A stretch of 64,000 bases of DNA. It comes from Syncephalis fuscata S228 (Eukaryota; Fungi; Zoopagomycota). Below the pieces are notes generated by a model, which ran no database searches, was not told where the DNA came from, and saw only the letters and a list, made by a program, of their open reading frames with translations. Shown here one piece after another: positions 3,860 to 24,610 of this stretch. The position numbers and the translations under genes are program-made. The stretch spans positions 682,001 to 746,000 of the forward strand of contig JAHLTZ010000010.1 of NCBI GenBank assembly GCA_025786725.1. Reading direction: 5' to 3'. Numbering within the stretch: the stretch's first letter is position 1; every line of letters begins with the position of its first letter.

Positions 3860-6411
3860 ATGTCTCATTGGCGTCGGTTTCTTACCGTATCGAGGAACAA
3901 CCAGTCTTTCTCTACTGGACTAGTCCGTTCAGTACTAGTAAGCAGCCGTGCTATTCGACCACACCATTTAGTCTCTGGCACTAGCGTATTGACACCACGG
4001 GCATATCACGCACACCATGAAGCACAAAGTGCCATTCTACCTGATATGGTTGACCGACAATCGGATATCTTTAAGGTCAGTCTATATCAAGCTGTATAGC
4101 TATATCAACGTATTAATGCAATATATACGTAGGATAACCATTTACGTATGAATCAATTAATTGAGGATTTGGAATTAAAGACCAGTGTACTCCGTCAAGG
4201 TAACATTGAATGATGTCAATTATACGCAATTGTAATAACATACAAACATTGATTATAAGGCGGCGGTGAAGTTGCCCGTCAACGTCATCTTAAGCGTAAC
4301 AAGTTATTACCACGTGATCGGTGAGTGTATAAATCTATAGCATTAATCAATTACTTAATTAAATTTAATAAATTGTATAGTGTCAATCGATTGTTAGATA
4401 ATGGGTAATTAAATAATGGCAATCATAGACATTCACAATTAATCAATAGATAATGTGGTTAGATCGCCATTCTTGGAATTCTCAGCCTTTGCTGGCTATG
4501 AGCTCTATGAGGACAATGTGCCATCAGGAGGTATTATTACGGGTATTGGACGAGTTAATGGGTAATACGATAATAGATAGCCATTAATTAATAAGTATTA
4601 ACACGCTATCAGAGTCGAGTGTATGATTGTAGCCAATGATCCAACGGTTAAAGTTAGTAATAATATTAGTTAGTATAGATAGCTAATAATACATATGATA
4701 TAATAGGGCGGCACCTATTATCCAATTACAGGTAACTATTTATGATTACAGTTATTAGTAAATAAACTAACCACTATTTAGTTAAAAAGCATTTAAGAGC
4801 TCAGGAAATTGCCCGAGAGAATCGCTTACCGTGCATTTACCTAGGTAATCTATACAATATATGCTAATTAATGCAATAGCATTAATATGCAATAATAGTT
4901 GATTCAGGCGGTGCCAATTTACCACGTCAAGCCAATGTATTCCCTGATCGTGAACATTTTGGCCGTATATTCTACAACCAGGTATGGCTACTATTGAATT
5001 GTACCAATTAAATACTAATAGCAATCCATTAGGCCACTATGTCAGCACAAGGTATTCCACAGATTGCCGTCGTTATGGGATCGTGTACAGCCGGTGGTGC
5101 TTATGTACCAGCCATGGCCGATGAATCGATTATTGTAAGCAAGCAAGGTACTATTTTTCTAGGTGGACCACCGTTGGTTCGTGCTGCCACCGGGGAAGTT
5201 GTTAGTGCCGAGGATCTAGGCGGCGCCGATCTTCATTGTAAGTGGCCCATATAATACAATAGACTGTATCAATAACATAACGATAATAAATAGGTCGTAC
5301 ATCAGGTGTTACTGATCATTATGCACTTGATGATGAACACGCATTAGTATTGGCACGCCGTGTTGTATCTACACTTAATTACACGAAACAGCCATCAGTT
5401 ACTATGCAATCGCCGGAGTCACCGCTTTATTCGGCATCAGAGCTCGGTGGTATTGTTGGCGATAACTTGAGAAAGACATTTGATGTTAAACAAGTCATTG
5501 CTCGCGTAGTTGATGGTAGTCGATTCAGTGAATTTAAAGAACTTTATGGCACTACACTAGTAACAGGTAGATGGTATTTGTAGTTATTAATATCCATTAA
5601 TTGTTAACACTTTATTAGGATTTGCACATATTCATGGTTATCCTGTGGGTATTGTGGCTAATAATGGCATTCTATTCTCAGAATCGGCATTAAAAGGCGC
5701 CCATTTCATTCAATTATGCAGTAAGCGTAATATTCCTTTAGTATTCCTGCAGAATATTACTGGCTTCATGGTGGGATCATCGGCCGAAGCAGGTGGCATT
5801 GCCAAGAACGGTGCTAAACTAGTTACCGCTGTGTCTTGTGCGCGTGTTCCTAAATTCACCATGATTATTGGTGGTAGTTTTGGTGCTGGCAACTATGGCA
5901 TGTGCGGTCGTGCTTATAGGTAGGTTAACTAGTTAATTTAATAGCAATAATGCTAACATGTACTCATAGCCCGCGATTCTTATGGATGTGGCCTGTAAGT
6001 GGTTTATGAGTTGTTATTCAATGACAGTATACTAATAACAGTAATGACTATTAATGGCAATAGAATGCACGTATATCAGTTATGGGAGGCGAACAGGCCG
6101 CCAATGTATTGGCTCAAGTAAAACGAGATGCCATGTCCAAACGTGGTGAAGAGGTAGATATTATCGCATAGTATATAGTAATACAGTATTTATAATGAAT
6201 GCTATAGTGGAGTGTGGATGAAGAGACTAGTTTCAAGAAGCCAATTCAAGATCAATATGAAAAAGAAGGCCATCCTTACTTTGCTTCAGCCCGTCTATGG
6301 GATGATGGCATTATTAAGCCACAAGATACAAGAGAAACACTAGGTCTTGCTCTTAGTGCTGCTTTAAATACACCAATAGAATCAACTGATTTCGGTGTAT
6401 TCCGTATGTAG
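3860..6411 (+). CDS. MCCC2: 3-methylcrotonyl-CoA carboxylase beta subunit, mitochondrial
   Basis: Arg/Ser-rich presequence; [50 protein letters not shown]-terminal FGVFRM. Many short exons. Confidence 0.95.
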
Positions 6412-6705
6412 TGACACTACTACTACTACTACTGGCTATTCTATTATCTTTTAATTGATAATAGATTAAATAAAATAATATTAAATTAATTAAAATTTAA
6501 TCATTGAAGATTGATTCTTGGGAAAATTAGCAAAATACATCGTTTTTAAATTTTTAAATTTTCCATTTTTTCCATTTTTATAAAATAAATACATTGTTTT
6601 AAGTGTTACCATAATAAATTGTTCTTTTGAAGCTTAGTATAATAAATAAAATAATTGTTTTTTAATTTTATTTGTTGAAATACACCGTTTTGAAAAATCT
6701 AGCAA

Positions 6706-6981
6706 ATGTCTACCAAACTATATAAAGAAGCTATATTTAACAGTATTGAAGAGCTGAGGGCCGCTGTTGACAAGTTTAAGCTTGTTAGCGATTGCAGTTT
6801 TAAGAGGAAAGATAGTGATTCAACAAGATTACAGCTTATTTGTCCTCATGAAGGCCGTTCCAGCAACAAATTTCAGTTTGTTTTAATTGCCAGAAAGCAA
6901 AAAATTGGCCTAGTAAAAACTGTTCAATGCAATCTTGAACTTTTAATGACTGTCTATATAACTCTGGTAATGATACTATAA
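6706..6981 (+). pseudogene. Truncated MuDR-family transposase N-terminal DNA-binding domain
   Basis: FNSIEELRAAVDKF...FKRKDSDSTRLQLIC matches the MuDR N-terminal pattern (F.s.eelk.av..y...f...ksd..r...C). The ORF ends after 91 aa. Confidence 0.65.
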
Positions 6982-7620: not shown

Positions 7621-8854
7621 ATTTAAATTTAATCAACAAATAAAATTAAACTGGTTATTTAAAGCGTTCAATATCAATTTAGCAATTAAATAATTCGAAT
7701 TACATGAAAGTATTATTCCTTTGATCAACTCAAATTAGTTAGTTGGTCATCAAGCAAGAGTGAAGATATGCAAAATAAAGCCGCCAACATGGCATTTGTC
7801 ATTGATAAACTAGAATAATCTACTCGTAACATTATTCTTAAATGTCGCAGTAGTTGCTCCAATATTCTAATTTAGAAAAGTTATGGAACATGGTAAAAAA
7901 AGCTTAAGAGGATGTTGTGGTGGATTATTTAAACCACTTGCTTTGTATTAAATCTTATGATATTTTCATTAACTAAATAAAGATAACTTTTCACAATATT
8001 AAGCACACTATTGGTTGTTTAATCTGATTTGGCAGTTAAATAGTTATAATAATCACACATTTAAACCAGCTATTTATTTTATTGAAGATGAAAATGGGTG
8101 TTGAATGTCATTGATCATTAAACTATTTACTTATCATTATTATTGTACTGTACATATCTATCCTGTATACATATATTATATGTCCATCTATATCATTAAT
8201 AATGTAAATTATAAAAACTATATTAAAAAAAGCTAAAAGTTTATTGCTAACTGTATTCTTTCAGTAGTTTTTGATTCATTTCGTTCATGACTCTTGGTTA
8301 ATTGCATACAGTAGTTTCACTATCATTATTCACATATTCGTTCTGTCTACTTATTTTGTATTATAATATTTATGCTTTATTGCCATGTTTTATTAAAAAA
8401 CGCTTTTATTCTAATTTCAGCATAATGTTACTTAGCTATATGATAATGATAGCTTTGCTACTATCCATACCAATCTATACCTATAGCTTAGGCAATATAT
8501 CATACACACTTTGTTATTAATTTAACTATTTGATTAATAATTGTCAATTATTGGATACAAATAGAACATGATTATAGATGTAGCAATTTGATTGTATATA
8601 TCTAAGATGAAACCATAATTTATTACTATAAGCTTACACAGTTGAATAGAAACAACTAGATGCAAACTTGTTAATAAAATAACGATTCCATTGGTTAAAG
8701 ACTGGATAAACCGGAGCATTGGCCAAAACTTGATATATAAATAGACTGGACGGCGTAGTTGTCAAATGGTCTTGATTTTCACCGAATATATACCTAAAGT
8801 GTATTGGAATAATGGCTTGATTGCACTACCAATGCTGATGTCTTGAAACCATGA

Positions 8855-10498
8855 TTATGCTGTATTTACAAATAAAGATATTATATGTCATATAATTAAT
8901 GTATAAGCCATCGATATGCAATACTACTTACACGCTGTTAATATTAAATAATCAATACAGTCAGTAAATAGCGTGGTTAATATATGGTCAGTTAATATAC
9001 AATAGTACTTACGGCCTATTGATATTGAATTATTTATAGGCATAACACATGGTATGTAATTAGTGCATAGTCAGTTAATATATAATACTACTTACATGCT
9101 ATTAATATTAAGATAGTTATAGTTATAATGTATGGTGCATAATTAGTGCATAGTCAGTTAATATATGATACAACTTACGGTCTATTAATATTAAGTTGTT
9201 TATACGCATAATGTATAATACATAATTAGTACATATTAATTTAGTATAATACAACTTACACCCTATTGATATTGAATTATTTATACGCATAATACACGGT
9301 ACATAATTAGTATATATTCATTCAATATATAATACAACTTACAGCCTATTAATATTAGGTTATTTATACGCATAATACATGGTACATAATTAGCCAGTAG
9401 TCAGACAGTATATAATACTACTTACCAGCTATTAATATTAGGTTATTTATACGCATAATACATGATACATAATTAGTGCATAATCAGCCAATATATAATA
9501 CAACTTACTCCCTATTAATGTTGTTATTTATACACATAATACATGGTACATAATTAGTGCAGCCAGTTAATATATAATACAACTTACATACTATTAATAT
9601 TAATATAGTTATAGTCATAATGTATAATAAATAATTAGTGCAGTCAGTTAATATATAATACAACTTACCAGCTATTAATATTAGGTTATTTATACGCATA
9701 ATACATGATACATAATTAGTGCATAATCAGCCAATATATAATACAACTTACTCCCTATTAATGTTGTTATTTATACGCATAATACATGGTACATAATTAG
9801 TGCATAATCAGCCAATATATAGTATAACTTACAACCTATTAATATTAAGTCATTTATACACATAATACGTGGTACATAATTAGTGCGTAGTCAGTTAATA
9901 TATAATACAACTTACATGCTATTAATATTAAGTTGTTTATACACATAATACATGGTACATAATTAGTGCATAGTCAGTCAATATATAATACAACTTACGT
10001 TCTATTAATTTGAATTATTTATACGCATAATACATGATACGCAATTAGTGCATAGTTAGTCAGTATATAATATAACTTACTTGCTATTAATTTGGATTGT
10101 TTATACGCATAATACATGGTACACAATTAGTACATAGTCAATCAATATATAATACAACTTACGTTCTATTAATTTGAATTATTTATACGTATAATACATA
10201 GTACACAATTAGTGCATAGTCAGTCAATATATAATACGACTTACCAGCTATTAATATTAAGTTATTTATACGCATAATACATGGTATATAATTATTGCAT
10301 ATTTATTTAATCTATAATACAACTTACCCCCTATTAATATTAAGTAGAAATACTGTTAGTAAGCATAATAATATGATATATCTATTGTTATTGCAACATA
10401 CCAGCACGACGAACTAAGGCTGGATTAGCGCCCACCATGGCTGTACTGGCCGCAAGAGCCACGACAATGGTGCAAACGACGGCAATGGAAAGCTTCAT
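8855..10498 (-). CDS. Secreted 51-aa prepropeptide encoded by 20 exons, 18 of them 3 nt: MKLSIAVVCTIVVALAASTAMVGANPALVRRAGAEPKPCWTVWTGWYPCPS
   Basis: Exon 1 is 10498-10402 (97 nt, signal peptide + RR, donor GTATGT). 3-nt exons (lowest + coordinate) at 10328, 10245, 10163, 10081, 9999, 9916, 9833, 9752, 9669, 9588, 9509, 9426, 9343, 9260, 9179, 9096, 9013 and 8932, each flanked by (T/C)AG and GTAAGT. Last exon starts CA TAA at 8859-8855. The joined frame is open throughout. Confidence 0.85.
8925..10345 (-). repeat. Tandem array of 79-83-bp units, each one intron plus a 3-nt exon
   Basis: Minus-strand consensus GTAAGTTGTATTATATATTRACTGACTATGCACTAATTATGTACCATGTATTATGCGTATAAATAACYTAATATTAATAG-NNN, with CTAAT branch-like motifs. 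Confidence 0.95.
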
Positions 10499-10629
10499 GG
10501 TGATATTTATTTGTTAAAACAAACAAATAAGAGAGATAATAGAGTGTGGTTGGTATAGAGTAGAGAGTAGTGCGTGTATAGCAAGAAGTAGAGTGTGATG
10601 ATGATATCGCAGTTGGTTGTGTATATTTT

Positions 10630-10646
10630 GTGGGCTATTTAAGCCT
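10630..10646 (-). promoter_or_regulatory. Possible TATA-like element of the micro-exon peptide gene
   Basis: TTAAATA about 140 nt upstream of the ATG, followed by a CT-rich leader and ATCACCATG start context. Confidence 0.3.
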
Positions 10647-10789
10647 ATGGCTATGGTGAGATTTCAGTGTACTGTAGTATACGAGATATATCATTGATAT
10701 ATAATATGAACCAATAAAGCAAACCCAAAAATGGTTTAAGGTGTATGTGTATATTAATAGATTGGGAGTGTGATAGTATGCTTCTTAGC

Positions 10790-11320
10790 TTTGACTTCAA
10801 CCTGCCCAGTCTTGATTTCAACCTGTTTGGCCTTGATTTCAACCTACCTGGTTTTTACTTCAATCTTCTCGGCATTTACACAAATGATACGGCAATTCCA
10901 ATGAGCAGTGCATATACGATAGAGATATGTACACCGTTCTGTGTTTTTTGTTTCACGGTCTAACTATTTGATAAAAACAAGTATATTGTTTGGTTTTGTG
11001 AAAACGATAATGGTGTTTTTCCTGTTACTTCCACCGAATGACTCGGGTCCCAACATCTGCATGCATACAAAATAACACATAACTTGCCCGGTCTTTATTT
11101 TAATCTGTTAGTCGTTTGCACGATTACTGTGATGCTGTTTATAATTTAGTGCATATACGATAAAAATAGATATTAGCCTGTATTTTTGTTGCACAATCTA
11201 ACTATTTGGTAAAAACAAGTATATTGTTTGGCTTTGTAAAACGATAACGATGTACTTGCCGCCATTTCTGTCGATTCAGTCCTCAATATCTGTTGCATAC
11301 AGAATAGCACACAAAACTGA
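10790..11320 (+). repeat. Four 21-bp tandem repeats followed by a diverged ~240-bp tandem duplication
   Basis: TTGA(C/T)TTCAACCT units at 10791-10870. GTGCATATACGATA...CTAACTATTTG.TAAAAACAAGTATATTGTTTGG.TTTGT occurs at ~10908 and ~11149. Confidence 0.8.
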
Positions 11321-13632
11321 TGCAAAAACAAGCTTAATGTATCAAACTGGTATTTTATACAGGTTTTACTGCCATACATAAGCCAATTATAATTCCTTAA
11401 ATTATAAAGTGTGTTGATTGGTATATGTATGTATTCCATTCGACACTATGCCCATTGTTATGGGGCAATCACTGCTTTGAATTTACAAATCCATTACATT
11501 CAGGCATATTATGTTACATGTTGCACAATTATCATCATTCAAATGGCGGTTAATCCAAATTACCTGAACTTGACTATACAATAAGTACTGTTTGTAGAAT
11601 AATGCATCACAGTATTTGGAGCAATGGAACATTCCAACAAGCATTTTCGTCATCAGCTTTCAGCTTTAAACTAAATTGCATCGGCTAAATTATACGCAAT
11701 ACAATATGCAGACATTAGACTAGATACAATAAAAAGTTCTAGCCAAACATCAGCAATTTCAGGTGCATAATAGCAATGGATTGCATATGTGCTGTTTATA
11801 TTTCTAAAATCAATTTTGACGAGTCAAGCAAAATGGATTATAGAAGAACAAGCCAAACCAGAAACCAATGAAAAAACAATTGGCATCTTAAAGGCTTACT
11901 GGCTTAGCTTATAGCAAATCATTATAGCTATGCTAAGCCGGACTACATTTATCAAAAAGTTGGCTGTTGCTGATGCAGCTAAAACAACAGTAACGTTAAA
12001 CCGAGATAACGCACAAAAAACGGAGAGATGTAAATAAAATTGAATAAATAAGTTTAGTAATTAAATAGCTTATTGTTGTTGCTATAATTTATAATTCTGG
12101 TTATTTGTGCGGATAAATATTTACAATCACATTGTTTTCTTATATGCTTACATTTATACAACCACTAACTAAGCCAACTATTATAAGAACTAATTTAATC
12201 ATTTATTAGAGTAAGCAGCTAATATTATACATTATTGCAATAATAGAAAGACAGATTAATTTTATTTATTGACCATTAATAAAAGTTGTATAGCTATATT
12301 AAAATAAAACAAAAATAACAAATTGAACGCGTAATAGTATAATTAAGTCATTTTTACTTCGACTCCACGTCTTTTATTTACTCATTTTACCATCTTTTTC
12401 TTATTACTATCTTATTGTTTTATTTTGTAGTATATTATCCAATAATGCCAAATATAACAATATAAATAGCATGCGTATTTGAACATCAATAAAAACATTA
12501 TTTAATCCCTAGTCTTTATTTTTCTTATTTTACATCAACACCTGTTCAAGTAACCTCAACGGCATGTCGTATATTCTGGTTACAACTGTCGCCACAAGAT
12601 CTTCCTGGTAAATACACTCAACCTATCATTATTACATATGATGGAGGCCATTTGCTTGATCAATGATTGGCAAATAATCTGCACCTATCAATTTGATACC
12701 AAGTATACTCAAGAGAATGGTGAACATTAGAAATGCTAGCCTCCTATCTCTTTGTCACCATAGACGAGTATTTACATTGAAAATATGCCCAAATACAACA
12801 GTAGAAGCTTAGCAGATAGAAGTGACCATTTAGATACAAGAAACCACACTGTACGTAGTAACAGCAACAACAACTGCGGAATAACATGGAATCGCAATCA
12901 ATGGCTTTTATTAATATTCAATCAATCTTTCTACACATGGCTAACAACAACAATAGGCTCCGCGAATTGCAAAGTAGTTGAATAAAAACATTATAACTAT
13001 GTTTTTTGTACATAACAGCATTTTTTCAATTAAAATCAATTTTGCTTTGAAGACTCAAAATATGAAAGTTAAAGTAAAATTGGCAAATTTTGAAAAGCTA
13101 AAAATGCCTGATAAGAAAAAGTTAATTATGATAAATGCAATAATTTTAATTTAAAACCGCTTATTTACGTAGTATAGTTTATTGCAGCAATACTAACAGC
13201 AATCCAATTGTGTTTTATTTGTTAAAAAACTTTTAACAATATACAATACAAAAATATGCCGTGTAAAATTAGTACTAATAGTGTTGAACTAGTAGTTAAT
13301 GTTAAACGTCTTTTATTAAACAAATACAAAATAATAATGAAACAGCTATCAAAAAAGAAAAGAAAGTGCCATTAAAAAGTATTTAATCTGAGGTAAACGG
13401 CATTACAAAAAACAGTGTGGACAAATAAAATGATTTTATCAATAAACAAATTTAATAAATTTAAAACGGAGAATTTATTATGGGGAAATTTAAAACAGTG
13501 TATTTTCCTAATTTTCCTTTGATTCTTTTTTCTTTTTTTTTTAATTCGCCACCGATCTTCATCGCGTGTATCTGTGTGTGTACATCTGCACTTGTACGGC
13601 TACTACTTTACTTTACAGTTCGTTTATATACC

Positions 13633-16600
13633 ATGCGTTCTAAAGGCTGGCGTAAAAGAAATGTGGTTAGGAAACCCCGTGATGCACCTAATGGTGAACG
13701 AGGTGTTGGCTATAAAGAACTAGAGAAAAGTAATCCCGTACTAGAAAGCTATTACAAAGTGAGTTATATACCAACTCATATTAAGAATAGTATAGTATAT
13801 TAAACAGTATGGTATAGGAACAGAATGTTGTACCAGAAGAAGAATGGGAGTCTTTTCTAACCTATTTACGAACTGAATTGCCAACTACATTCCGTGTTAC
13901 CGGTACACGCAAGTAAGTTACTACAAATCAGTCATAATAATATATCAATGTAATTTAAATAATAGAGTGGCCACTGAATTAAATGAAAATATTAAGAAAA
14001 AGTATATTCCAATATTAACGAATATTACAATCGATGACAAACCCGTTGAAGCACCTACTAATTTACCATGGTAAGTGTATTAATAACTATGAAATACGTT
14101 TAATTAATAGATTTTATATATAAATATATTAGGTATCCTAATGGCTTTGGATGGCAATTATTAAGTAGCAAAATGGCTGTTAAACGATCCCCTGAATTTA
14201 AACAATTCCATCAATTTTTGGTGGCTGAAACAGAAGTGGTAAATATTTATAAATACATTAATTAATTATTAATAATCAGCACTAATATATCTATTTTCTA
14301 TTAATAGGGAAATATCAGTCGACAAGAGGCTGTAAGTATGATTCCTCCGCTGTTACTCGATGTAGAGCCACATCATCTAGTAAGTGACTACTAGTATGTC
14401 TATACAACTATGTGTTAACTATTGAACAGGTACTTGATATGTGTGCAGCACCTGGATCTAAAACGGCTCAATTGGTTGAAGCTATACACGCTAATGATAC
14501 ACCGGGCGTCATTCCAGGTAATTAAGCGTTACTAATACACGTGTTACTATTAACTTTATTATACGATTATATAGCGGGTGTCGTGGTGGCTAATGATGTT
14601 GATGCCCGTCGTGCTTATATGCTCGTCCATCAAATGCGTCGACTTCAAAGTCCATCACTTGTCGTGACTAACCATGAAGCACAGCATTTCCCTAATATTC
14701 AATTTGATTTGGGTGTAAGTTGTAGTACAGGCTAATGAATACGGTTAACTAATAGTCGGTCATTGATAGTTGGCACCAGGCGATAAGTCCAAGTTACAAT
14801 TCGACCGTGTCCTATGTGATGTGCCATGCAGGTAAGTCGAATAGTAAATACGGTACAATACAATACAATCTAATATATCTATATATGTATGTGTGTATTA
14901 GTGGTGATGGTACTTTGCGCAAGAATGCTATTATATGGCAGAATTGGCATTTGGGTAATGCTATTGGTCTACACACGTAAGTGTTAACTATAGTTTATTT
15001 GATATAGCGATTGACATGAATACCACTAGTACACAGATAAGCATTTTAATGCGAGGATGTCAATTATTGAAAGTGGGTGGCCGTCTTGTTTATTCAACCT
15101 GTTCAATGAATCCCGTTGAGAATGAATCAGTAGTAGCTGCAGTGCTTAATCGATATGCTGGTAAATCAATATATAAATGTGTCATTGACTATTTACTAAT
15201 AGTTATGTTATCAAGGATCAATTAAGTTGGTTGATGTCAAGGATCGCCTGGTAGAGTTGAAGAGACGACCAGGTTTGACCAAATGGAAGGTAGATAGAAT
15301 AGAATAGACCGCATTAATAGAAACATAGTATTAATCGTATCGTTTGTAATAGATGATGTCGAAGAGTGGTGCTTGGTATGATTCATATGATCAAGTGCCA
15401 GCATCAGAACATAAAGTACTTCGTTCAAGTCTTTTCCCACCTGCCAATGCTCATGAATTGGGATTAGAACACTGGTAAGTGGTCCTATTATTATGACAAC
15501 ACGTAGTATACTTATATTTGATATAGTTTACGTATTTACTCGCACCTTCAAAACACGGGTGCCTTTTTCGTTGCTGTATTTGAAAAGACAGCGGCTATCA
15601 CAATGGCAGAAAAAGCCAAAGAAGAAGCTGAATCGAACGGCTCAGATAGTGAAAAGATTGATGATACTGAAGTGGATACAGTAATTGAAGATAACACCGC
15701 TAATGATGTAGCAATTGAAGATGGCACTGTTACTGATGCAGCAAAACGGTCGGCTTCTTCTATTCCAGCCGAGTCGAATCAAGAAGTGAAACGGGCCCGT
15801 AATGACGACAATGATCAATCAGTATCCGATAAAGCAAAGGATTCAGAAAAACCAGTCTCTAAAGGTGGCTATAGTAACCCAGAAGGACCATTTAAACTAT
15901 TAAGTGCCAACAATACTAGTATAGCCGAGATTTGGTAGGCTGATCAATATATATGTATATATATAATTAATACTTGTATATTTATATAATAGTGAATTCT
16001 ACGGATTATCAAATGAATTTCCTCGTGATCAAATACTTGTTCGCTCTGATGTGGAAGAGAATAACAAAACATTATTTTTAGTATCGGGTACCGTTAAGAA
16101 AATACTACAAGCCGCCGACATTGCCCGATTAAAGGTAATGGTCAAATATGTTTATTTATATGAATAGTGAATACTGAATAATGAATGATATAGCTTGTGC
16201 ATACAGGTATACGTGTATTCATCCGTAATGAAGGCAGCAATGAGCGGGCCTTCCGTTATCGCTTACAAGCTGATGGTCTTGGTGTTGTGGCGCCATTGTT
16301 ATCACCGACCCGTGTAGTGAATGCCCACTTGGACGATTTACGGGCATTAGTATTACATCAAAATCCATTATTGGATGATTTGACACCAGAAACCAATAAA
16401 TCTTTAGATGAGTTACGTAAGTTGTATTATTATTATTACATTAATAACTATATTGATTACTATTGATGTTATGGTTATTGTTATTAGAACCTGGTTGTTG
16501 TGTTCTTCGATTTGATCCATCGCCTTATCCTGAATTGACGTAAGTATCGATAATACAACTAACCAATTAATCTTGTATTATTTATAATAACGTTGATACT

Positions 16601-16926
16601 GATACCGATATATATATATACAGTATGTATGAGATGCTTTATATTCCAGTATGGCGTGCACGTATCTCTGTCAATCTACTATTGAGTAAACAAGAGAAAA
16701 GGTAAGAAGGAAGCTTATCATAGACTAGCTATAATACAATAATGAATTTAAATACGGTCGTGTTTTATTATACGATTTTAGATCACTTGGATTCCGTATT
16801 GGCATCGACATTCTATCTATTGAGAAACAGTCGAAAGAGGAAACAGCTACTGATGCAACTGCGGCCACAACAATTACCGCAACAACGACGGAAACCACGG
16901 AAACGACAACCATGACGTCAGATTAA
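13633..16926 (+). CDS. NCL1: tRNA (cytosine-5) methyltransferase NCL1/TRM4 (NSUN2 family)
   Basis: [64 protein letters not shown]. Confidence 0.95.
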
Positions 16927-23639: not shown

Positions 23640-24520
23640 TTTGAATAAACACATTGAAATGTTAGCTTTTTAAGACAAATACAACAATTATGTTTATTTT
23701 AAAAATAAATTTGAATGATTGGATATACACATTAAAATGATAGCTTTTTATTTAAAATACATACAACAGTTATGTTTGCTATGATAATAATGACCAAATG
23801 ATTGGATGTACACATTAAATGTTAGCACCTCATATAAAATAACTACTAATTATGTCTGCTACGATAATAAATGACTAAATAACTAAATAACATATTAAAA
23901 TGTTAGCTTTTATTTAAAATAAATACAACATTATGTTTGCTATTATAATGAATGACAAATAATTGAATATACATATTAAAATGTTAGCTTTATTAAAATA
24001 ACTACGTAATATGTTGCTATGATAATAAATGACTAAATAACTAAATATACATATTAAATGTAGCTTTTATTTAAAATAAATACAACAGTTATATTTGCTA
24101 TGATAATAATGACAAATATTGATTACACATTAAATGTTAGATCATATAAATAACTACGTAATTATGCTGCTATATAATAAATGACTAAATAACTAAATAT
24201 ACATATTGAAATAATAGCTTTTTATTTAAAATAAATACAACAGTTATATTTGCTATTATAATGAATGACCAATGATTGGATATACACATTAAAATGTTAC
24301 TTATTATAACTACGTAATTATGTCTGCTATGATAATAAATGACTAAATAACTAAATATACATATTGAAATGATAGCTTTTATTTAAAATAAATACAACAG
24401 TTATGTTTGCTATGATAATGAATGACCAGATGATTGGATGTACACATTAAAATACTAGTTTTCTCTAAGATAAATACTGCAGTTATGTTTATTTTAATAA
24501 TAATGACTGAATAATTGAAT
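23640..24520. repeat. AT-rich minisatellite, ~80-bp units with alternating A/B higher-order structure
   Basis: Recurrent ACA(C/T)ATTAAAATGTTAGC...TGCTATGATAAT..ATGAC. Units alternate AAATACAACAGTTAT and AACTACGTAATTATG. About 11 units. Confidence 0.9.
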
Positions 24521-24610
24521 AATGCTACTGATAAAAAATAACTTTTTAAAATAAAGCGAATAAAGGCGAACGTGAAACTATTGTAAAAGAAAAATATGTT
24601 ATGTCATTAG

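Follow-up and report, generated by a model that had tools for sequence, protein, structure and literature searches.

The 64,000-nt stretch of Syncephalis fuscata DNA analyzed here (the window) very probably contains an intact gene from a family whose small secreted peptides have a mature part spelled by exons of 3 nt. A She9 ORF of the window matched S. fuscata, and contig JAHLTZ010000010.1 of GCA_025786725.1 agrees with the window at 100% identity (offset 682000). Syncephalis, a genus of the Zoopagales, parasitizes Mucorales and is not known as a pathogen of humans, animals, or crop plants. In the proposed model, each family member would encode a signal, a pro segment, a dibasic RR site, and a variable mature part; the last of these would be assembled from tandem units, each composed of one spliceosomal intron of ~80 nt and one symmetric phase-1 exon of 3 nt, and the main product would take in every exon in order. 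Splicing would most likely proceed by intron definition, intron after intron, as the shortness of the introns suggests. A branch site near -48 may be used, followed by scanning through an AG-free stretch (weaker candidates are present at -14 and -8), and such a distal site would keep U2 clear of the next donor, which lies 3 nt past the AG. Duplication or deletion of a unit would add or remove one residue without a frameshift, recombination between homologous introns would homogenize and reshuffle the units as the exon bases change fast, and reverse transcription of spliced mRNA would repeatedly have generated intronless copies, either as retrocopies or by intron loss in place.

A first-pass annotation had described the apparent satellite as an array of 18 exons on the minus strand, and a motif scan bears this out. 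YAG-NNN-GTAAGT units occur 18 times between 10330 and 8932, with the triplets and order as claimed, and none of the other spacer lengths between 0 and 12 nt yields a match. The scan also recovered the reported 97-nt exon 1 ending in phase 1, the unit lengths of 79-83 nt, and the terminal CA-TAA, and the joined phase-1 reading has no internal stop, as stated. The description of one codon per exon was in error, however; the exons are in phase 1, and the three bases of each are divided between two codons (2+1 nt). When the region was resampled with a first-order Markov model, YAG-NNN-GTAAGT sites numbered 0.014 on average and 1 at most, but a tandem repeat multiplies any motif, and consequently the site count by itself is not evidence of splicing. 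Likewise, 36-39% of exon-order shuffles are also stop-free, so the open frame of this gene alone is weak evidence.

The features of the locus are collected in Table 1. The 17 array introns are 76-80 nt long and have a mean identity of 83%, with invariant GTAAGT and YAG; their best-conserved internal motif is a branch-like CTAAT near -48, present in 15 of them. TRF reports the array as an 83-bp repeat. Two of the introns (9751-9672 and 9508-9429) are identical and their flanking triplets are repeated, the trace of a three-unit duplication that would have lengthened the peptide by three residues. Alignment of 5' flanks shows a TATA-like box that is conserved ahead of every intact array paralogue and ahead of two intronless copies, and the upstream end of the 5' UTR is the point at which the similarity of a retrocopy-like paralogue (L061:6001) starts. 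The product of exon 1 has, by inspection, a conserved hydrophobic N-terminus and RR, and intron 1 has an identical position in all array paralogues. The stop is placed relative to the 3' UTR exactly as are the stops of intronless paralogues, and because retrocopy-like paralogues change to a short A run near 8604, the poly(A) site probably lies there.

Table 1. Positions in the window gene and in related or comparable loci
Feature	Position	Strand	Basis or remarks
TATA-like box	10635..10642	-	5' flank alignment; putative function
Putative 5' UTR	10499..10605	-	5' flank alignment; putative start site
Exon 1, 97 nt	10402..10498	-	Signal peptide (by inspection), short pro-segment, dibasic RR; ends in phase 1
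Intron 1, 71 nt	10331..10401	-	Donor GTATGT; CTAAC near -30
Array of 18 three-nt phase-1 exons and 17 homologous introns	8932..10330	-	Motif scan, intron alignment
Micro-exons 1-9, first bases	10330, 10247, 10165, 10083, 10001, 9918, 9835, 9754, 9671	-
Micro-exons 10-18, first bases	9590, 9511, 9428, 9345, 9262, 9181, 9098, 9015, 8934	-
Three-unit tandem duplication, recent (trace)	9426..9754	-	Intron alignment; TRF period 247
Last intron, 72 nt	8860..8931	-	Homologous to last intron of L062, L063, L067
Terminal exon, coding part (2 nt + TAA)	8855..8859	-	CA-TAA; first AG past last donor
3' UTR	8604..8854	-	Common to family; 88-95% identity with closest paralogues
AATAAA poly(A) signal	8624-8619	-	Putative poly(A) site near 8604
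Insertion family	L060:9250-9580; L062:8755-9230; L063:8190-9005, 9508-9870, 11098-11492; L066:12856-13650		Antisense A-rich tail, short target duplications
Kinase-linked chains	L004, L006, L035, L040, L047, L052, L054		Metagenome contigs, GC 0.17-0.25
Phase-0 open chains of 3-nt exons	L030:36-3118, L032, L024:6237-7141, L015, L058		Asp/Tyr- or Pro/Leu-rich

In the window, the gene has housekeeping genes for neighbors, which encode a class I tRNA ligase, a carboxyl transferase, and an RsmB-type methyltransferase (419-1819, 4782-6411, and 13600-16900), and the array is absent from an unrelated fungus reached via the flanking carboxylase gene. Other repeats are also present in the window. An AT-rich tandem repeat at 23644-24521 (period 81/158), between two convergent gene ends, lacks AG-NNN-GT units and is apparently a minisatellite of the ordinary kind. 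A short 21-bp repeat is located at 10787-10845, upstream of the promoter, and a dispersed repeat of ~190 nt occurs in inverted copies, 78% identical, at 12771-12955 and about 48420-48610.

A dispersed peptide family in S. fuscata

Exon 1 matches at least 17 S. fuscata paralogues. A protein search with exon 1 returned nine proteins, all from S. fuscata and 69-87% identical, and a profile of these nine relatives reached 16 proteins, again from S. fuscata only. Family members are alike through the signal and pro segment to RR and differ beyond it. On at least 10 contigs, paralogues occur one at a time with unrelated genes around them, and the family is thus dispersed.

Twelve gene copies, including that of the window, were read. 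Homologous arrays, whose absence together with a lack of any transcription would have counted against the first-pass proposal, were looked for and found at five loci (L060, L062, L063, L064, and L067) and in a pseudogene at L066, giving seven micro-exon arrays; the five intronless copies are those of L059, L065, and L066 and two in L061 (L061a/b). The 5' UTR, exon 1, and a 3' UTR of ~250 nt are common to all 12, and in most arrays the terminal exon consists of two bases and the stop, at the place where the intronless copies stop. The array genes carry 16-40 micro-exons each, of which 158 of 166 are 3 nt; a translation-blind parser found the remainder to be of 6 nt (five), 9, 33, and 2 nt (one each), and one of 15 nt was recovered later. 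Array introns across the family range from 54 to 83 nt. The NCBI/JGI models of array genes (P0242-P0246 and P0253) splice them otherwise, reading into intron sequence, which is probably a failure of prediction and hence mis-annotation; for the window gene, there was no gene model among the protein search matches.

Two of the arrays are damaged. The frame of the L063 array is broken once, at 11806-11807, by a 2-nt exon within a run of G, either an assembly error or a real break; this one position was read as X, and the locus also has three insertions. The seventh array copy (L066:12371-15090) has ATA in place of ATG, and its splice signals are broken as well, with one acceptor AG lost, a 2-nt exon, and an insertion. 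This copy is clearly a pseudogene and served as a control for decay. Within L061, two different intronless members lie in tandem at 4752-6900, with nearly identical 3' UTRs and downstream flanks, and extra, degenerate fragments of exon 1 occur at 5526 and 6796.

Probable joining of the 3-nt exons

The earlier proposal that the 3-nt exons are spliced into a secreted peptide is supported by matches to intronless paralogues, by the depletion of stops and of AG, by the shared terminal exon and UTRs, and by the decayed copy. Array readings, with the phase set by exon 1, were compared pairwise with intronless paralogues, using 2000 shuffles of exon order as a control. The reading of L067 can be aligned over its full length to intronless P0251, with a score of 109 against a shuffled maximum of 46 (p<=0.0005), and the alignment spans six cysteines, KDPAK, and NYPYPS. 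The L062 reading scored 67 with P0241 (shuffled maximum 56) and 61 with P0251 (maximum 44), and that of L064 scored 69 with the intronless L066/P0252 (maximum 52), in a match that includes CKCxDxDGxCTSC; p was <=0.0005 in each case. Furthermore, exact strings of 14-16 nt that are split over 4-6 micro-exons in the arrays occur unbroken in intronless copies. The peptides of the window, L060, and L063 have no counterpart in any of the five intronless genes, and the case for the window gene rests on family membership and intact signals.

The junctions themselves carry a further signature. In six arrays taken together, none of the 155 consecutive junctions creates a stop, against an expectation of 9.2, whereas 7 stops occur at skip-one junctions, where the chance level is ~9. 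Because stops are absent at consecutive junctions yet present at skip-one junctions, selection acts on full inclusion. Within array introns, AG occurs 28 times versus 308 expected, and the GC content of array genes is 0.48 in exons versus 0.25 in introns, although the introns are homologous and consequently not independent in either comparison. The sequence anatomy, the family, the homology with intronless copies, and the depletion of stops and AG are observed in the DNA, whereas present-day expression, the order of splicing, and the function of the peptides are inferred.

It is possible, if doubtful, that the array serves mainly for combinatorial alternative splicing, such that transcripts skip different 3-nt exons and generate a library of peptides. 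The exons are all symmetric, and skipping would then keep the frame; in L060, L067, and the window gene, stops do not arise from any single skip, and there is a precedent for the alternative splicing of 3-nt exons in Tuber, while combinatorial splicing is also reported for schistosome micro-exon genes. However, the chance-level frequency of stops at the skip-one junctions of the six genes, against none at consecutive ones, counts against such a library. In addition, the full-length cysteine spacing is preserved in intronless copies, and skips would break the disulfide patterns; in phase 1, each skip also recodes a junction codon. Full inclusion in the main product thus remains the preferred reading.

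Peptides, unit turnover, and intronless copies

The window gene has a predicted precursor of 51 residues and, past the RR, a peptide of ~20 residues with two cysteines and three Trp. Precursors in the family are 50-90 residues long and predicted to be secreted; the L060 peptide has a second site, KR. Searches of Pfam, PDB sequences, Foldseek, and Rfam gave no significant match. Intronless P0251 was modeled as a helical hairpin (pLDDT 81), and this CxxxC hairpin, predicted for one subfamily, recalls the alpha-hairpinins, although the Foldseek matches of the model are not significant, no significant sequence match was found, and the fold is inapplicable to the two-cysteine peptide of the window. 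Precursor anatomy, rapid divergence, and lifestyle make it somewhat probable that the peptides act outside the cell as effectors or antimicrobials, on host fungi or competing microbes.

A different role is conceivable for the window peptide, which might be a pheromone-like signaling molecule in the form of a short loop, rich in Trp and closed by a disulfide, that Kex2 would release. Its size, two cysteines, and three Trp presumably recall ascomycete alpha-type pheromones, and the dibasic site, together with the second KR in L060, would suit such processing. However, the X-A/X-P dipeptides past the RR are out of register for Ste13-type trimming, there is a single mature unit rather than a repeated one, and the paralogues are larger peptides with 4-6 cysteines and unrelated sequences, more like a family in an arms race. 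This role is therefore considered unlikely.

Beyond the RR, the family diverges quickly. The pN of mature regions is 0.29-0.41 versus 0.05-0.10 in the signal, but pS is also higher in the mature part (0.32-0.55 versus 0.09-0.18), and mature pN/pS is about 0.7-1.2 despite six fixed cysteines. Positive selection, faster mutation, and conversion would all fit a pN/pS near 1 with a raised pS. Families of effectors, toxin-like peptides, or antimicrobial peptides have a profile of this kind. As for the units, the nearest relative of 100 of 152 array introns lies within the same gene, and the rate of difference between exon bases is 0.70 per base even for units whose two flanking introns have an identity of 90-95%. 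Whole units have been duplicated in the window (three units), and similarly in L062. Units with the same triplet have weakly similar flanks within genes (p 0.03) but share no flanks between genes, and wholesale transfer of triplets between paralogues is consequently unsupported. Compared by position, the introns of L062 do not correspond to those of L067.

Array introns also receive insertions (Table 1). The inserted family resembles a non-LTR retroelement and is active there; in 205 kb of S. fuscata DNA, 6 copies were found, every one of them in an array intron at an ATATT site, which suggests that the family targets the repeat unit. Given a clear pseudogene at L066:12371 and, at L063, a frame break and three insertions, the window copy might itself have been recently silenced or be non-functional, the family architecture nevertheless being real; the lack of a model from protein searches and of an intronless counterpart would be in keeping with this. 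However, the window gene retains its ATG, promoter, 18/18 donors and acceptors, terminal stop, and poly(A) signal, it is free of insertions, and its cysteines are paired. Recent silencing is thus judged quite improbable, and an intact gene is favored.

In a tree built from the UTRs and exon 1, the intronless copies are placed beside different arrays, and their monophyly is rejected (AU p 1e-7), such that at least 3 changes are needed. The introns of all arrays are homologous. Since the intronless copies are scattered and the array introns share one ancestry, the simplest history is a single origin of the array followed by repeated loss. L061a/b and L065 lack the promoter and have a short A run just after AATAAA, at the poly(A) site; these look like hallmarks of retrocopies. 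The intronless copies of L059 and L066 retain the promoter and downstream flank, as expected for replacement in place by cDNA. The intronless genes are best read as fossil spliced mRNAs in which about 30-40 consecutive micro-exons would have been included.

Similar arrays in fungal-type contigs and comparison with known systems

A search for further 3-nt arrays, as the first-pass annotation had suggested, used a two-unit DNA pattern and found 55 metagenome loci, about 30 of which have long chains specific to 3-nt spacers. By means of a prokaryote control, GGA-only arrays (L005, L012, L021, L042, and L048) were rejected as cyanobacterial CRISPR-type repeats, and L008, L017, L019, L022, L027, L034, L037, and L043 were left out of the count of splicing arrays. 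Such repeats display the same DNA pattern without splicing, and TRF sees an 83-bp repeat in the window, but a neutral minisatellite arising by tandem duplication of an intron, with non-coding triplets and lying inside one long intron or removed wholesale, is highly improbable: the triplet is invariant in the prokaryotic repeats (434/435), whereas S. fuscata triplets vary ten times more than the flanking intron bases, avoid stops, and spell peptides homologous to intronless genes, and for L062, L064, and L067 the match of exon order to intronless paralogues refutes it. A CRISPR array or plain satellite was likewise rejected for the window, as the genome is fungal, Rfam gave no match, and the triplets are variable and coding-like.

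At the kinase-linked loci, 6-24 or more 3-nt phase-1 exons lie immediately upstream of a protein kinase exon (Pfam), and at most of these loci the kinase frame is open in phase 1 from the first acceptor that follows the chain. There is 1 stop at 245 consecutive junctions versus 12.4 expected, and there are 13 at skip-one junctions. The kinases are presumably members of an expanded Glomeromycotina family. The phase-0 chains probably belong to basidiomycete and ascomycete contigs; L030 contains about 22 near-identical introns of 57 nt around triplets that vary at positions 1-2. No homology was detected when the intron units of the metagenome contigs were tested against those of S. fuscata, and independent origins are thus suggested.

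In the precursors of conotoxins, defensins, and alpha-hairpinins, a conserved signal is followed by a hypervariable mature part in one ordinary exon. The S. fuscata family shares with them a signal, a pro segment, a dibasic site, and a Cys-rich mature part, with a conserved signal exon and a rapidly changing mature region. Closer in gene structure are the micro-exon genes (MEGs) of schistosomes, which are specific to the Schistosomatidae and whose symmetric exons are mostly 15 nt (6-81) and separated by introns of 0.1-5 kb (10.1101/2023.06.21.545858). Like MEGs, the family occurs in a parasite, has a predicted secreted product with a conserved putative signal peptide and tandem symmetric short exons that hold most of the mature protein, evolves fast, and is missed by gene finders. 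Unlike MEGs, it is fungal and non-homologous, 95% of its exons are 3 nt, its homologous introns of ~80 nt form a tandem repeat, and it is known here from DNA.

Exons of this size have been described in other fungi. The nank (NACHT-ANK, NLR) genes of Tuber melanosporum contain dozens of alternatively spliced 3-bp exons (Iotti 2012, PMID 22289772, as relayed in PMC4986451, PMC9815663, and PMC13449251). As far as these accounts describe the Tuber genes, both systems are fungal multigene families with tens of tandem 3-bp exons, and the Tuber region is thought to diversify recognition in biotic interactions. They differ in that the S. fuscata product is a small secreted peptide with its whole mature part in micro-exons, rather than a segment of a cytoplasmic NLR, and has no Pfam domain, NACHT-ANK included; in that the phyla are different, with no sequence relationship expected; and in that S. 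fuscata has intronless derived copies. Moreover, the mechanism reported for Tuber is alternative splicing, whereas the S. fuscata signature favors full inclusion. In Coprinopsis cinerea, long reads demonstrate the splicing of internal exons of 1-3 nt, including 27 three-nt exons in 26 genes (PMC12230235), but these number about one per gene, rather than forming tandem arrays. A literature search that covered few subscription papers turned up no account of genes like these in Syncephalis, nor any of a fungal secreted peptide made wholly from 3-nt exons or of intronless derived copies. The novelty claimed for the window gene is to be tempered, given the dozens of 3-bp exons published for Tuber. 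The S. fuscata system is a blend of Tuber-type and MEG workings and belongs to neither.

Taken together, these observations have led to a broader hypothesis, the arguments for and against which are judged to be evenly balanced. Arrays with one residue per exon would have evolved repeatedly and independently in fungi, for the most part unannotated, as a means of diversifying interaction molecules one amino acid at a time. The molecules would be secreted peptides in Syncephalis, the N-terminal regions of an expanded family of kinases in AT-rich (probably arbuscular mycorrhizal) fungi, and the products of phase-0 arrays in other fungi. The homologous introns would act as recombination handles by which single residues are added, deleted, or swapped, and reverse transcription would periodically fix a successful variant in intronless form. 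If so, fungal "satellites," including those in kinase genes of probable mycorrhizal fungi, may be coding sequence that is masked or mis-annotated. In S. fuscata, the arrays bring to light hidden genes that are candidates for mycoparasite effectors or antimicrobials and for which the public gene models are wrong. They offer a compact, tractable case for studying the joining of 18-40 successive 3-nt exons by a spliceosome and for weighing diversification by splicing against shuffling of units at the DNA level, with the intronless copies as a record of past spliced mRNAs.
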